33,360 nucleotides of DNA, taken from positions 7,650,215 to 7,683,574 of the forward strand of contig NC_069008.1 in the NCBI RefSeq assembly GCF_001194135.2, in the 5' to 3' direction. The position numbers and the translations under genes were made by a program. This DNA is from Octopus bimaculoides. Its lineage: Eukaryota. This document shows, piece by piece, positions 736 to 32,883 of this stretch; the stretch's first letter is position 1; each line of letters starts with the position of its first letter. The notes under the pieces were generated by a model, which saw only the letters and a list, made by a program, of their open reading frames with translations, made no database searches and was not told the DNA's origin.

Positions 736-941
736 GGACACACTGGAGCATTGAAGTTAAACTTAATAAGACATATGGCAACGATGAATATTCTTTTGAA
801 ATAGAACCTTTTGTTAAGACGAATGTAGTATTTAGACCAAATAATAAAACATCAAATAAATCATTCTTTCTTCCTATGGAAATGAATGAAAGGTCGAGAA
901 TAAAGTTATTGATGAAAGGAAAATTTTGGCTGGATACAGAT
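736..941 (+). CDS. Exon A (repeat 1, long exon): (G)THWSIEVKLNKTYGNDEYSFEIEPF...RIKLLMKGKFWLDTD
   Basis: Acceptor cttactttctag|GG, donor GAT|gtgagc. Lies within ORF 711..974. Phase 1 to 0. Sequons NKT, NKT, NKS. Confidence 0.8.
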
Positions 942-2789
942 GTGAGCAAAACCCTTTATTATTTTTTCACTTAGAAAGGAGCATACCTGTTTGACTCAAC
1001 CGCAATATATTTCTTGCTTTTCAGGTTTTTTAGATTTGTGCAAATAATCTCAGCTTTACCAGATAAGCCCCTGAGACATTTATTAACATAACCAACTGTA
1101 TTAATGATTATTACTGTATCTATGCCTGTTTATATATTTAAACATTGTAAAACCTCACTTTGGATGAAGCAAGATTATAGACAAAAAAAGGGATGAATGA
1201 GAATATCATAATTTAATGCTTAGATTTAATTCAGTTCTGATATACACTACATTGTAAATAAACAAATAATCTATGAATACATTTGTTTGTTTGCTTTACA
1301 TCTGCTTTTTTCTATTCTAGCATGGGTTAGATGAATACATATTATCAAGGAGATGCTTGTCATGTCACTAACCCTTCCCTGGCTTTCAATGAAGGGAGAT
1401 GTCATTCTGCTTGTCTTTCAAAGTACAGAGCTACAGGACAATTTTCTGATAAGGAAATGACAGCAAACAGCATCATCATCATCATCTCTGGCTTACCCCA
1501 GGAAAGAATGTGAACATTTACACAGACACACACATGCATGGTCCCTGTACTAGGGAGACTGTCACCTTCTTGACAACNNNNNNNNNNNNNNNNNNNNNNN
1601 NNNNNNNNNNNNNNNNNNNNNNNNNNNNNNNNNNNNNNNNNNNNNNNNNNNNNNNNNNNNNNNNNNNNNNNNNNNNNNNNNNNNNNNNNNNNNNNNNNNN
1701 NNNNNNNNNNNNNNNNNNNNNNNNNNNNNNNNNNNNNNNNNNNNNNNNNNNNNNNNNNNNNNNNNNNNNNNNNNNNNNNNNNNNNNNNNNNNNNNNNNNN
1801 NNNNNNNNNNNNNNNNNNNNNNNNNNNNNNNNNNNNNNNNNNNNNNNNNNNNNNNNNNNNNNNNNNNNNNNNNNNNNNNNNNNNNAATGTGACAAACAGG
1901 GTGGATAGCAGGTAGAGTGATGGTGGGAGCAAACTAGGATGTGTTTGGGGAAGGAGCCAAGTGTATGATAATAGAAACAGAAAGATGGGGGTGAAGGGGT
2001 GGCAAAAGAGAAGGAATGTTGACTGCATTGAAAGAGAGAACAAGACTGTTTGTAGGCAGTATTTAGTACAAATATTTCCAGTGCCACCCTTTATAACAGA
2101 GGCATAATGGCAGAGAGTAAGGGAGAGAGAGAGAGAGAGGAGAGAGTGCGAGAGAGACAAGAGGGTAGACAGGTCTTCTCTGCAGGGTACAGAGAAGAGG
2201 AGAGATTCACTGTTATTGTTAGTTAGACAGGCTGCTGGTGGAGTGTGGTTGGATAATAGAGAGATGAGTGATAGAGAACTGATAAAAAGGTTAGATGGTG
2301 TACCAAGAGACAGTCTAGGCAACTTATGTAGACACAAATGGAGGATGGAATAGGTAAGAGACCGAAATGTAGACAGGTTATATCTACCAGACTCCATCAC
2401 TAATTCTGTTGCAACATTCAGTTCTACATGAATCTATGATTTAGAATATCTTCAAGTTGAATATATTAATATGACAAGACCAGGTTCTGTCCCTGATGCC
2501 ATCATCAGTGGATCCAATAGAATTCCTTTATGTTGTTTTAAGTTTCTTAAATCACGTGTAATGAATGTGAGCAGGTGAGCCCCTGTAAAGATGGTCTTGT
2601 ATGACTATTTATGAAGTTATCAATATTTGAAAGAACACTTCAGTTGAAGTAGAGGTAGCTGAGTGGATGGATAAGTGAGGTATTCCTCATCTGTTTAATT
2701 ACTGGATCCAGAACAAATGTGACACCTGTCTAAACCCATATAATTCCTGGAGATGTAATTTTGTTTGTGTTTTTGTTATTTTAATTTAG

Positions 2790-2889
2790 ATCAAACTGAA
2801 GAATATGGAAACTTCCGAAATATATTCCTGTATTTATCTTCATGATCAATTTATTCAAACTTCTTACCATGAATGTTCATCGGCAAACG
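2790..2889 (+). CDS. Exon B (repeat 1, short exon): IKLKNMETSEIYSCIYLHDQFIQTSYHECSSAN
   Basis: Acceptor ttttaatttag|ATC, donor ACG|gtaagt. 100 nt, phase 0 to 1, open frame. Confidence 0.85.
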
Positions 2890-3460
2890 GTAAGTTGATA
2901 AAAAGTATTTCTCATATAATTTTATAAGAAACAATGAAATAGTTCTGTCTTGTTGCCTGTGTGGCTTTTACCAGATGTTATTGATAATAAAGAGAGGGAG
3001 CAGGATGAATTCTAAATGATCCATGCTGTTGATGTTACTTTCAACAGATAAATCTTCCTGGCACCAAATCCATTTTCCAAACCAAAGATCTAAAACTAAA
3101 CACTACCTTCTGATGCTCTACATTGACGTTCTGTCACATTTCCAATTATATTTCTCACCTTTATCCTCATCATCATCATCATCAGTATTTTGTTATTCAT
3201 CTTGTTCCTGCTTGCATGGGTCGTAAGGAATTTGTTGAGGTAGATTATCTCTAGGTGGATGCCCTTCCTCTCACTAACCCTCACTTGTTTCCAAGGAGTG
3301 TAATATTTCCTGATGGAGTGGACATAAATTGTGGCAGGCTGGAAACAAGGGACACTGCTTGTATGATGGGGATGTTCATCTACAACAACTATATGTTGTC
3401 AATGAGACACAACCACCTCCACACACACACACATTACATATATTACATATGTATATATAT

Positions 3461-3606
3461 ATTGCTTCCCAGCCACATGGTTCCAGGTTTGGTTCCACAG
3501 TGTGGCACCTTGAGCAATTGTCTTCTACTGTAGCCTTGGGCCAACCAATGTGTTGTGAGTAGATGTGGTAGATGGAAACTGAAAGAAGCGCACTGTATGT
3601 ATGTAT
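3461..3606 (+). mobile_element. Partial tRNA-derived SINE (family 1, 5' half)
   Basis: Aligns by eye with the full copies at 13523 and 32232 (ccacatggttccaggtt...ggaaactgaaagaagc). It stops at the TA-rich central tract where the Tc1 begins. Confidence 0.75.
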
Positions 3607-3607
3607 A

Positions 3608-4645
3608 CATAGGGGTTGGACAAAATAATGGAAACGCCTTAAAATTTCAAACAAATTTATTTTAATATGGGGTAGGACCACCTTTGGTAGTGATTACAGC
3701 TTGAATTCTATGAGGTATGGACTCGCACAAAGTTTGAATTGTTTCCAAAGGAATTTTTGTCGATTCTTCAGCTAAAACAGTCTCCAGTTCTTGTAGTGAT
3801 GATGGTGGAGGATATTGACTCCTTACTTGTTTTTCTAAAATACACCATAAATGTTCAATAATATTGAGATCTGGGGACTGCGGTGGCCAGATAAGATGTT
3901 CAACTTCACTAGAATGTTCATCGTGCCATTCAGTAACAACNNNNNNNNNNNNNNNNNNNNNNNNNNNNNNNNNNNNNNNNNNNNNNNNNNNNNNNNNNNN
4001 NNNNNNNNNNNNNNNNNNNNNNNNNNNNNNNNNNNNNNNNNNNNNNNNNNNNNNNNNNNNNNNNNNNNNNNNNNNNNNNNNNNNNNNNNNNNNNNNNNNN
4101 NNNNNNNNNNNNNNNNNNNNNNNNNNNNNNNNNNNNNNNNNNNNNNNNNNNNNNNNNNNNNNNNNNNNNNNNNNNNNNNNNNNNNNNNNNNNNNNNNNNN
4201 NNNNNNNNNNNNNNNNNNNNNNNNNNNNNNNNNNNNNNNNNNNNNNNNNNNNNNNNNNNNNNNNNNNNNNNNNNNNNNNNNNNNTTTGTTGTTGAAAGTA
4301 GTGGTTTTCTGATTGCAGCCCTCCTGTGAAATTCTGACTTTGTGCATCTCCCAGCGAACAGTTTTGTGGAAACTGGGTTCTCGAGGTGGTCATTAAGCTC
4401 TGCAGTAATTTTGGGAACTGTACTTTTGTGACCCTTTCTAACAATTCAGGTAAGAGTCCGACAGACCCTATCTGAAAGTTTTGGTTTTCTTCTGGAGTTT
4501 TGTTTTAAAGAGGAGGTTTTTCCGTCTTTCTTAAAGGCTGTCATTACTTTTGAGACAGTACTTCTTGATACACCAAACATTTTGGCTGTTTTCGTTACAC
4601 TAGCGCCTGCCATACGAGCCCCAACAATTTGACCTCTTGAAATGA
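3608..4645 (-). mobile_element. Tc1-family transposon, degraded and 5'-truncated, with N-gap 3941-4284
   Basis: Minus strand encodes FQRGQIVGARMAGASVTKTAKMFGVSRSTVSK (HTH) and WPPQSPDLNIIEHLW...IPHRIQAVITTKGGPTPY. TIR-like AGGGGTTGGACAAAATAATGGAAAC at ~3611. In-frame stop and frameshift. Confidence 0.9.
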
Positions 4646-32160: not shown

Positions 32161-32201
32161 TGAGGAAGCCTCTTCTGTACACACACACACTCACCCTACC
32201 C

Positions 32202-32231
<30 letters not shown>

Positions 32232-32232
<1 letters not shown>

Positions 32233-32630
32233 GGCGCAGGAGTGGCTGAGTGGTAAGTATCTTGCTTACCAACCACATAGTTCCGGGTTCATTCCCACTG
32301 CGTGGCACCTTGGCCGAGTGTCTTCTACTATAACCTCGGGTCGACCAAAGCCTTGTGAGTGGCTTTGGTAGATGAAAACTGCTAGAAGCCTGTCGTATAA
32401 ATGTATATATATATGTATGTGTATGTATATGTTTGTATGTCTGTCCCCACCAACATCGCTTGACAACTGATGGTGGTGTGTTTACGTCACCGTAACTTAG
32501 CGGTTCGGCATAAGGCACTGATAGAATAAGTACTAGGCCTACAAAGAATAAGTCTTGGGGTCGATTTGCTCGACTAAAGGTGGTGCTCCAGCATGGCTGC
32601 AGTCAAATGACTGAAACAAGTAAAAGAGTA
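32232..32630 (+). mobile_element. tRNA-derived SINE family 1, full length
   Basis: A box TGGCTGAGTGG at 32243-32253, B-box-like GGTTCATTCCC at 32286-32296, conserved core, 3' gtaaaagag plus (TA)n. Confidence 0.92.
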
Positions 32631-32657
32631 TATATATATATATATTGTCTATTGCAG

Positions 32658-32883
32658 GTTCAAGATGCTGAGAAAGAGCTTAAACAAAGGTTACATATCA
32701 ACACCTCAAGACACTGGTAGATGTAAAGTCTATATTCCTATGCAAGATGCTAACATCACAAGACCCAGTACAGAATTAGGCTCTCAACTGCAAAACCCTG
32801 AAGATATATATGCAAACACAGATCCAATGTCAGGAGGGTCAGCTGCAGTCCGTGATAGTGCAGTATATGAAGATCTTCACTAA
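32658..32883 (+). CDS. Exon I (terminal, cytoplasmic tail): RFKMLRKSLNKGYIST...KVYIPM...EDIYANT...SAVYEDLH*
   Basis: Acceptor ctattgcag|G completes AG|G = Arg from exon H. Matches ORF 32665..32883. Basic stop-transfer residues and four Tyr. Confidence 0.85.

Follow-up and report, generated by a model that had tools for sequence, protein, structure and literature searches.

The last nine exons (exons 4-12) of the Octopus bimaculoides gene LOC106879029 lie on the + strand at positions 736-32883 of the window, by which we mean the whole stretch of 33,360 nucleotides that was analysed. The best explanation of the evidence as a whole, to which we give about an even chance, is that this gene encodes an octopod-restricted, PLAT-like type I receptor that joins recognition by its ectodomain to signalling by a tyrosine-bearing tail. 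A PLAT-like ectodomain combined with such a tail is an unusual receptor design.

Gene model and integrity of the locus

Spliced together, the nine window exons encode 429 aa that match exactly the C-terminal 429 aa of RefSeq XP_052833284.1, the 541-aa product of LOC106879029 (RefSeq label "uncharacterized"), and the model shares 97-100% identity with the RefSeq models for that gene. AG acceptors, GT donors and compatible phases were found for 9/9 window exons. The claim of nine phase-compatible exons giving about 429 aa, made in an earlier note on this DNA, is thereby borne out, and at the level of sequence the nine-exon model and its predicted junctions are confirmed as real. Since LOC106879029 was already annotated, it is undescribed rather than undiscovered.

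Exon 1 of the window (gene exon 4; 736-941, +, phase 1>0) encodes the first part of domain D1 (THWSIEV...FWLDTD) and is entered in phase 1, its W codon being shared with an upstream exon beyond the window; tblastn with 27 family proteins gave a best E-value of 2e-40 for this exon, which is identical to XP_052833284.1. Exon 2 (2790-2889, +, phase 0>1) adds the second part of D1 (IKLKNMETSEIYSC...HECSSAN) with its Cys pair. D2 is encoded by exon 3 (8821-9053, +, phase 1>0; ASVWKIEL...AFDIFK) and exon 4 (18223-18316, +, phase 0>1; IVVTRVLTGEEYGC...YSCRLLQ), the latter again carrying a Cys pair, and D3 by exon 5 (22098-22324, +, phase 1>0; SKNWQLRI...LRIND) and exon 6 (23537-23636, +, phase 0>1; ISLRNDYSEYKFK...EFIPITK). 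Exon 7 (24962-25003, +, phase 1>1) supplies a membrane-proximal stalk of 14 residues (EKFHPDKTVHNMKI), exon 8 (26533-26596, +, phase 1>2) the TM helix ((V)IGLFVVIILLLIIIIVILCN), and exon 9 (32658-32883, +, phase 2>stop) the cytoplasmic tail ((R)FKMLRK...YEDLH), which ends in a TAA stop codon at 32881-32883. Family proteins matched all six exons of D1-D3 as well as the tail exon in tblastn (best E-values 4e-15 to 7e-47), and likewise the 42-nt stalk exon (E-value 2e-4), which is also present in the protein models P0001 and XP_052833284.1. The 64-nt TM exon, for which family proteins gave no tblastn match, was placed by a splice-site and open-frame scan of 23640-32655 together with identity to the RefSeq protein. 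The exons for the signal peptide and for the membrane-distal domain D0 lie upstream of the window, at 10001-10054, 18980-19177 and ~35960-36043 of the sequence extracted from GCA_001194135.2 (L001).

Eight assembly gaps fall within the window, two of them (24342-24373 and 28658-28921) additional to those listed earlier. All are intronic, at 268-4537 nt from the nearest exon, and none is crossed by a reading frame. The chromosome-level assembly GCA_001194135.2 does not differ in sequence or in gaps, and the gaps could therefore not be closed from it. Either a pseudogene or a faulty assembly or join, with exons lost or wrongly connected in the gaps, would be in keeping with the presence of gaps in 7/8 introns, with duplicated mini-contigs inside the upstream intron and with frame breaks in the closest O. 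sinensis relative; we nevertheless regard both as very improbable, because 12/12 exons of the gene have an open frame, canonical splice sites and phases that match, its product aligns colinearly with ~28 relatives out of three other assemblies (the paralogs being colinear across every exon junction), and AF2 gives a confident fold for each domain across its exon junction. The exon order of LOC106879029 recurs in an O. sinensis relative free of gaps (L002), in whose corresponding introns no additional family exon was found.

Predicted architecture and membrane topology

LOC106879029 is predicted to encode a type I (N-terminus outside), single-pass cell-surface glycoprotein, in the order signal peptide, D0, D1, D2, D3, stalk, TM and Tyr tail. 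The four tandem modules D0-D3 span ~90-110 aa each and are built from two exons apiece in phases 1>0 and then 0>1; those encoded in the window (D1, D2 and D3) comprise 101, 109 and 109 aa. The earlier proposals of a single TM helix and of an N-out topology both agree with these data. The TM is a 20-residue hydrophobic segment (VIGLFVVIILLLIIIIVILC) over which AF2 places a helix (residues 343-383 of P0001), and it is followed by the basic juxtamembrane residues NRFKMLRK; the current RefSeq model has a signal peptide (MLVLPYWSISFLVLPHFLYTQA) upstream of the window, and the sequons and Cys pairs precede the TM in the chain. The count of N-x-S/T sequons, previously given as six, is corrected to seven in the window-encoded ectodomain, one of which (N|AS) straddles the exon 2/3 junction, and is nine in the entire ectodomain. 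The Cys pairs of D1 (C84/C99 in alignment A4) and D2 (C92/C105 in alignment A3) are invariant and sit in the last two strands of their domains.

Predicted fold of the ectodomain modules

AF2 modelling of the whole protein, based like the other AF2 models on shallow alignments (22-29 sequences), gave three confident domains (pLDDT ~85-90), the TM helix and a disordered tail. D1 and D2 each came out as a beta-sandwich of eight strands, and D3 as one much like them (nine strands by DSSP, one strand being split), with an exon junction just ahead of the third-from-last strand in each of the three. D2 modelled alone again had 8 strands (pLDDT 85.9, pTM 0.79). A Foldseek search of the PDB with this D2 model returned PLAT/LH2 domains in 50/50 matches listed (prob 1.00, TMq 0.49-0.63, E-values 6e-4 to 1.5e-2, 109-135 aligned columns), from pancreatic lipases, LPL, 5-/12-/15-/8R-lipoxygenases and Rab6IP1, at an RMSD of 4-6 A and an identity of 8-14%. 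With the whole model, only PLAT-bearing lipases and lipoxygenases reached prob >= ~0.97. D2 is thus predicted to have PLAT/LH2 topology, and D1 and D3 probably share it.

Sequence comparison gave no corresponding signal. In Pfam-A hmmscan searches at E <= 10, PF01477 was absent for the gene model, for each repeat and for 29/29 family members, and no ectodomain match of any kind was obtained in the 29 members; searches of all PDB sequences with the domain profiles yielded no lipase or LOX match. Alignment of D0-D3 by hhalign with PDB-derived PLAT alignments gave prob <=1.1%, in a set-up where the control of lipase-PLAT against LOX-PLAT itself reached only 4.3%. The PLAT/LH2 claim of the earlier note is therefore supported at the level of fold, where no non-PLAT match appeared among the 50 listed for D2, and without support from sequence or profile comparison, the PF01477 check that it proposed having given no match. 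The claim of three repeats of ~100-110 aa likewise stands for exon structure and predicted fold and not for sequence, D1, D2 and D3 having no significant similarity to one another by hhalign (prob <6%).

These results bear on two other accounts of the domains. The repeats might be a lineage-specific beta-sandwich that resembles PLAT by convergence, through analogy and not homology, which would make the product a novel-domain surface protein and deprive PLAT-derived ideas of lipid or membrane binding of any weight. The missing sequence and profile signal to PLAT, the lack of detectable sequence similarity even among the domains, and TM-scores of 0.49-0.63 with an RMSD of 4-6 A, a range in which analogous sandwiches can occur, are all compatible with this account; we consider it rather unlikely, as the matches listed for D2 are uniformly PLAT/LH2 from four distinct protein families at prob 1.00 with full-length coverage, C2, Ig and FN3 sandwiches are absent from them, and the profile test is underpowered, a true pair of lipase and LOX PLAT domains scoring no higher than noted above. 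The domains could instead be Ig-like, FN3 or C2 sandwiches of an ordinary Ig-superfamily-type receptor overlooked by profile methods, a reading that is largely refuted and to which we assign scarcely any probability. An Ig fold was first suspected from an 'L-x-I-x-N-...-Y-x-C' motif (IKLKNMETSEIYSC / IVVTRVLTGEEYGC), which resembles the Ig E-F strand signature, and both the phase 1-1 domain units typical of Ig exons and weak whole-model Foldseek matches to PirB and KIR2DL2 point the same way. It was rejected on Foldseek, Cys spacing, strand count and Pfam: the PirB and KIR matches have prob 0.14-0.38 and an RMSD of 18-29 A, Ig, FN3 and C2 account for 0 of the 50 D2 matches listed, the Cys pairs are spaced by 13-15 residues in the last two strands and not across the B-F strands, each domain has 8 strands, and no Ig, FN3 or C2 Pfam match was found in the 29 members.

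Gene family and divergence

The gene belongs to a family of ~30-45 proteins, partly in tandem arrays, which on the sequences searched appears to be confined to octopods (Octopoda). Two word-indexed searches, an exhaustive HMMER scan and a profile search that included Argonauta (E <= 1) returned 21-30 matches, from Octopus and two Argonauta hians proteins only; the exhaustive search covered 1.8 billion representative proteins. Twenty paralogs or orthologs aligned colinearly over their full length (E-values 1e-47 to 1e-136). The O. vulgaris model P0022 is a fusion of three head-to-tail copies over 104 kb, which bears out the paralog cluster that the earlier note had thought worth looking for. 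Among Octopus paralogs mean identity is 35% for D0, 49% for D1, 50% for D2 and 62% for D3, the membrane-distal D0 being the most divergent. All but one of the family members are named 'uncharacterized' or 'hypothetical' in their source records, a literature search found no paper mentioning family genes, and no characterised family matches that of LOC106879029. The earlier suggestions of lineage specificity and of an architecture lacking a named family agree with this distribution and with the Pfam results for the ectodomain. Of the refuting conditions set in the earlier note, those put to the test (a non-PLAT fold, a missing signal peptide or N-in topology, and a match to a characterised family) did not speak against its reading.

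Cytoplasmic tail

The tail comprises 75 aa, is predicted to be disordered (pLDDT 27-35 past residue 390 of P0001) and contains four tyrosines. YANT (32809-32820, +) is a YxN motif of the kind that Grb2 SH2 domains bind; YxN is present in 13/16 genuine family tails, both Argonauta proteins included, and absent from 3/16. The distal YEDL (32866-32877, +) is a YxxL motif with paralog equivalents (YEEL, YEEF, YAMP or YAEP) near the C-terminus, so that a distal Yxx[LFP] recurs across family tails. YIPM (32731-32742, +), a YxxM motif, lies within a conserved x-[SPT]-M-Q-[NDT], its Tyr itself not being conserved in paralogs. YEDL and YIPM both also fit YxxPhi endocytic sorting signals. The tyrosine-motif tail claimed earlier is upheld by the recurrence of YxN and Yxx[LFP]. 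The LOC106879029 tail falls outside the ITAM consensus YxxL/I-x(6-12)-YxxL/I (it reads YANT-x15-YEDL) and outside the ITIM consensus [S/I/V/L]-x-Y-x-x-[I/V/L] (SAVYEDL, with Ala at -2). By regex scan, a canonical ITAM occurs in one member only, Argonauta P0035 (YSDI-x8-YLEI, YSDIGNTGYDNIYLEI), which is also the only genuine tail positive for the ITIM regex.

Proposed function

The ectodomain would serve as a recognition module, with specificity most likely residing in the membrane-distal domain, where paralog divergence is greatest. Ligand engagement or clustering may lead a Src-type kinase to phosphorylate the conserved tail tyrosines, whereupon an SH2 adaptor of the Grb2/Drk type would dock at pYxN and an SH2 protein of the Src, Syk/Shark or Shp type at pYEDL. 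In that way the octopus protein might act as an immunoreceptor-style sensor, whether immune, self/non-self or contact-chemosensory, with PLAT-like domains filling the place of the Ig domains of vertebrate receptors, the candidate ligand class being a lipid or membrane surface or else a protein. We infer that the LOC106879029 protein may couple lipid sensing to phosphotyrosine signalling.

The same protein with the same fold could alternatively be an endocytic, scavenger or adhesion receptor, its PLAT-like ectodomain capturing lipoprotein, lipid particles or membranes or making cell-cell or cell-matrix contact, and its tail tyrosines (YIPM and YEDL) being YxxPhi signals read by AP-2. Lipoproteins, colipase and GPIHBP1 are known partners of the extracellular PLAT domains in lipoprotein lipase and pancreatic lipase, and lipase PLATs of this kind are the top structural matches; this, the fit of both motifs to YxxPhi and the departure from canonical ITAM and ITIM speak for such a role. 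The best-conserved tail motif, however, is YxN, which is no sorting signal but a Grb2-type SH2 motif; a textbook ITAM is present in one Argonauta member; and a fast-diverging distal domain with tandem expansion is seen more typically in families of recognition receptors than in receptors for housekeeping uptake. We accordingly think uptake or adhesion a minority prospect, clearly behind a recognition receptor with a signalling tail. A bolder version of the latter, which we put forward tentatively and think doubtful as it stands, is that octopods evolved their own multigene immunoreceptor-like sensors, in which tandem extracellular PLAT/LH2-like domains, in place of Ig, LRR or lectin domains, detect lipids, membranes or further cues of non-self or contact, and which signal via YxN and YxxL, with a true ITAM in some; if true, this architecture would be without a described counterpart in any animal.

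Comparison with known systems

PLAT/LH2 domains (InterPro IPR001024) are characterised by a sandwich of two four-stranded sheets in about 110-120 aa, with loops at one end that contact membranes, lipids or protein partners. The best structural matches to D2 are the PLAT domains of secreted lipases (pancreatic lipase, PLRP1/2 and lipoprotein lipase; prob 1.00, TMq 0.49-0.61), which have in common with the octopus domains an extracellular, glycosylated or disulfide-stabilised 8-stranded sandwich of ~110-125 aa. In lipases this domain serves to bind lipid surfaces or partner proteins and is present as one copy fused to a catalytic alpha/beta-hydrolase, with no TM, whereas the octopus protein lines up three or four copies in tandem ahead of a TM helix and a Tyr-motif tail and lacks an enzyme domain, and its domains differ from lipase PLAT in sequence (identity 8-14%, no Pfam match). 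Lipoxygenase and Rab6IP1/DENND5 PLAT domains share the predicted fold of D2 (TMq 0.51-0.63 for LOX and 0.51 for Rab6IP1). The PLAT domains of lipoxygenases, polycystin-1, LOXHD1 and Rab6IP1/DENND5 are cytosolic; LOXHD1 has tandem PLAT repeats and neither TM segment nor signal peptide, and polycystin-1 is an 11-TM REJ/GPS protein. The octopus PLAT-like modules are, unlike these, predicted to be extracellular in a single-pass protein. Membership of the polycystin-1, PKD1-like or LOXHD1 families was rejected on the single TM, the upstream signal peptide and the position of modules and sequons N-terminal of the TM, and REJ, GPS and PKD gave no Pfam match in the 29 family members.

Ig immunoreceptors differ from the octopus protein in their ectodomain, which is Ig and not PLAT-like, and in their ITAM/ITIM/ITT tails, and there is no sequence relationship; an invertebrate ITAM precedent is Drosophila Draper. 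With KIR, LILR/PirB and FcR the predicted octopus protein nonetheless shares its overall design, namely a signal peptide, a string of beta-sandwiches in phase 1-1 units, one TM and a short disordered Tyr-motif tail, as well as its arrangement as a multigene family in tandem arrays and the fast evolution of its distal domain.

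Gene model and assembly context

The window is identical in sequence to positions 66177-99536 of the chromosome-level O. bimaculoides locus (L001; CM046628.1 of GCA_001194135.2, ~7.650-7.684 Mb), with a constant offset and the same N runs. It is AT-rich, contains many microsatellites and eight N gaps, and is directly preceded by a 3.2-kb gap. The rebuilt gene model has nine exons, with AG at every acceptor and GT at every donor, in an unbroken phase chain (1>0, 0>1, 1>0, 0>1, 1>0, 0>1, 1>1, 1>2, 2>stop). Its spliced product of 429 aa, the length given in the earlier note, is identical to the C-terminal 429 residues of XP_052833284.1 (P0047, 541 aa, ‘uncharacterized protein LOC106879029’). 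In tblastn searches, family proteins matched the tail exon and all six exons of the domains (best E-values 4e-15 to 7e-47). The 42-nt stalk exon (24962-25003; tblastn E-value 2e-4) was revealed by the best database match, P0001, and an eight-exon model was dropped on this evidence. The 64-nt TM exon was placed by splice-site scan and identity to the RefSeq protein. The window-encoded ectodomain carries seven sequons, not the six counted earlier; the additional one is split by a splice junction.

Each of the eight gaps lies within an intron, at least 268 nt from any exon, so no reading frame rests on unread letters. Two of them, at 24342-24373 (intron 6) and 28658-28921 (intron 8), fall inside the span of the finding and extend the gap list of the earlier note. 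The chromosome-level assembly leaves all eight unclosed because it contains the same contigs and gaps. Phases agree across each gapped intron, and the spliced protein is colinear with ~28 relatives (O. sinensis, O. vulgaris and other O. bimaculoides loci) without an insertion at any junction. The closest O. sinensis relative, LOC118764737, has a locus without gaps (L002; 58.7 kb, no N), in which the exons follow the same order (SP, D0a, D0b, D1a, D1b, D2a, D2b, D3a, D3b) and the introns contain no additional family exon. Together, these observations speak against both a mis-join and a hidden exon.

Two gap-flanked small contigs in an upstream intron of the same gene repeat parts of the window: L001 38411-38761 repeats window 52-402 at 100% identity, and L001 43141-43483 repeats window 2820-3161, which takes in the 3′ half of exon 2, at 96.8%. 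Both contigs are probably misplaced or represent haplotype pieces that were not collapsed, and the assembly near the gene, upstream of the window, is therefore unreliable. The O. sinensis gene LOC118764737 has a 1-bp frame break in its D2b exon (L002 47130-47132) and stops plus a frameshift in its D3b exon (L002 50442-50569), partly in a poly-A run, and its RefSeq model ends after D3a; the gene is a paralog in decay, or else these breaks are indel errors of long-read sequencing.

Read-through of the exon 6 donor (window 23637-23665) gives ...ITK-GMWYMGTCLV-stop, and three paralog models end in a similar way (P0002, GMRYTGTCLV; P0012, GIWCF; P0017, GIWCI). Such endings may reflect TM-less secreted isoforms produced by intron retention in the family, or annotation artefacts.

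Transposon-related sequence was found at two places on the minus strand. In intron 3, two adjacent ORFs (9644-11083) encode a PIF1-like helicase (PF05970, E-value 5e-59) and its 2B domain (PF21530, E-value 7e-13); they are probably a Helitron-type remnant and account for the local rise in GC at 10-12 kb. A Tc1/mariner-type DDE transposase (PF13358 DDE_3, E-value 4e-7) is represented by a C-terminal fragment at 3662-3940, which is truncated at the gap at 3941.

Domain architecture and predicted fold

The gene spans 89 kb in L001, where three exons upstream of the window add a signal peptide (MLVLPYWSISFLVLPHFLYTQA) and D0, a fourth module that is rich in Cys and again split over two exons. The full architecture is SP-D0-D1-D2-D3-stalk-TM-tail. 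The signal peptide settles the question of N-out topology, which had been proposed with the signal peptide still to be located, and this orientation agrees with where the sequons and conserved Cys pairs lie and with the basic stretch past the TM segment.

Using the family alignment, AF2 predicted three confident all-beta domains of eight strands each (block pLDDT mostly 80-95), followed by a helix spanning the stalk and TM segment and by a disordered tail. When the whole model was compared with the PDB by Foldseek, only pancreatic lipases, PLRP1/2, lipoprotein lipase and lipoxygenases reached a probability of ~0.97 or more, through matches of 114-181 columns that correspond to the PLAT/LH2 domains of these enzymes; probabilities of 0.1-0.4 with RMSD >14 Å were obtained for Ig receptors, C2 proteins, pilins and factor XIII. 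For a model of D2 only (pLDDT 85.9, pTM 0.79), 50/50 among the matches listed were PLAT/LH2-bearing and came from four families (lipases, LPL, 5-, 12-, 15- and 8R-LOX, and Rab6IP1), with probability 1.00, query-normalised TM-scores of 0.49-0.63, full-length coverage and 8-14% identity.

Ig-like domains, suggested by an L-x-I-x-N-x-x-x-x-x-Y-x-C motif and phase 1-1 units, were rejected on the basis of Foldseek, the number of strands and the spacing of cysteines. In D1 and D2, 13-15 residues separate the conserved cysteines, which sit on the last two strands and do not form an Ig B-F arrangement.

The PLAT claim of the earlier note is supported at the level of predicted fold for D2, and probably for D1 and D3, but not at the level of sequence. 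PF01477 gave no match at E ≤ 10 in 29/29 members, and Pfam searches with the gene model, each repeat and all 29 members returned TM-driven noise only. Family and per-domain profiles searched against all PDB sequences gave nothing except a TM-region match to Nav beta-4 (E-value 0.14). Comparison with PDB-chain PLAT alignments by hhalign gave probabilities ≤1%; this comparison was underpowered, as two genuine PLAT subfamilies, compared as a control, reached just 4%. The PLAT assignment is thus supported as a fold-level prediction, and the resemblance may reflect either homology or convergence. The sequence likeness described among the three repeats was likewise not significant by hhalign. An exon junction nevertheless occupies an equivalent structural position in D1, D2 and D3, just before the third-from-last strand, which suggests that a single two-exon unit was copied to give all the modules and that their sequences have since diverged.

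Family distribution and divergence

Family members were collected through word-indexed searches of 5.8 billion proteins and an exhaustive HMMER search of 1.84 billion cluster representatives. They were found only in Octopus bimaculoides, O. sinensis and O. vulgaris, together with two proteins of Argonauta hians; a profile including the Argonauta proteins gave no relative outside Octopoda at E ≤ 1. This distribution supports the proposal that the family is lineage-specific. The proposal that it belongs to no named family is likewise upheld: the 29 members lack a Pfam match in the ectodomain, and all source names but one are ‘uncharacterized’ or ‘hypothetical’. No description was found in literature on the gene identifiers, PLAT in cephalopods, extracellular PLAT receptors or octopus lineage-specific families. 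The one other name is that of P0005 (O. bimaculoides LOC106873066 isoform X2), whose UniRef name starts ‘Vitellogenin doma...’ and which has no recorded Pfam domain.

Several members lie on the same chromosome. The O. vulgaris protein P0022 (1009 aa, gene range 104 kb) fuses three consecutive head-to-tail copies, with tail followed by D0 twice over; the fusion is an annotation error, and the three copies show a head-to-tail tandem array. Domain number varies, with part of D1 duplicated in some members and D3 missing in others. Mean identity among Octopus paralogs rises from 35% in D0 through 49-50% in D1 and D2 to 62% in D3, and divergence is therefore fastest at the membrane-distal end.

Cytoplasmic tail and candidate function

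The proposed single TM segment and Tyr-motif tail were supported by the AF2 TM helix and by a YxN motif in 13/16 genuine tails, both Argonauta proteins included. As a whole, the tail is poorly conserved (34% identity) and predicted to be disordered. A second tyrosine follows YxN by ~15-20 residues, usually as Yxx[L/F/P] (YEDL in the window gene; YEEL, YEEF, YAMP or YAEP in other members). The window gene tail matches neither the ITAM nor the ITIM consensus; the C-terminus of P0035 (Argonauta hians) holds a canonical ITAM (YSDI-x8-YLEI), and in P0031 (Argonauta) an [EQ][QR]LY[TN]xx motif occurs five times, in four cases as D-I/L-E-Q/R-L-Y-T-Q/K-P. Candidate signalling motifs of the tail are diversified within the family.

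The analysis supports the structural reading of the earlier note: tandem extracellular PLAT-like domains, one TM segment and a Tyr-motif tail, in a lineage-specific protein outside any named family. As to function, pYxN is a Grb2-type SH2 motif and Src-family SH2 domains prefer pYEE[IL]; by inference, and at about even confidence, we favor an immunoreceptor-style recognition receptor that would signal through SH2 adaptors. An endocytic or adhesion receptor is appreciably less probable, and about as probable as a convergent origin of the PLAT resemblance. The endocytic role is the main rival because the distal motif also fits YxxPhi, an AP-2 sorting signal.

Because the gene was already annotated, what is new is the architecture and the family, not the locus. 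PLAT/LH2 modules occur singly on secreted lipases and toxins and are cytosolic in lipoxygenases, polycystin-1 and LOXHD1; no account was found in the literature of a single-pass receptor with an ectodomain built entirely of PLAT-like sandwiches in series. Should the predicted fold and tyrosine signalling be borne out, the protein would represent an octopod-specific way of cell-surface recognition and a concrete candidate receptor family for cephalopod immunology or chemotactile biology, and the Pfam-less family would offer a basis for a new domain definition. Lineage-specific expansions of protocadherins, zinc fingers, GPCRs and chemotactile receptors are thought to lie behind cephalopod novelties, and the family would join this short list.
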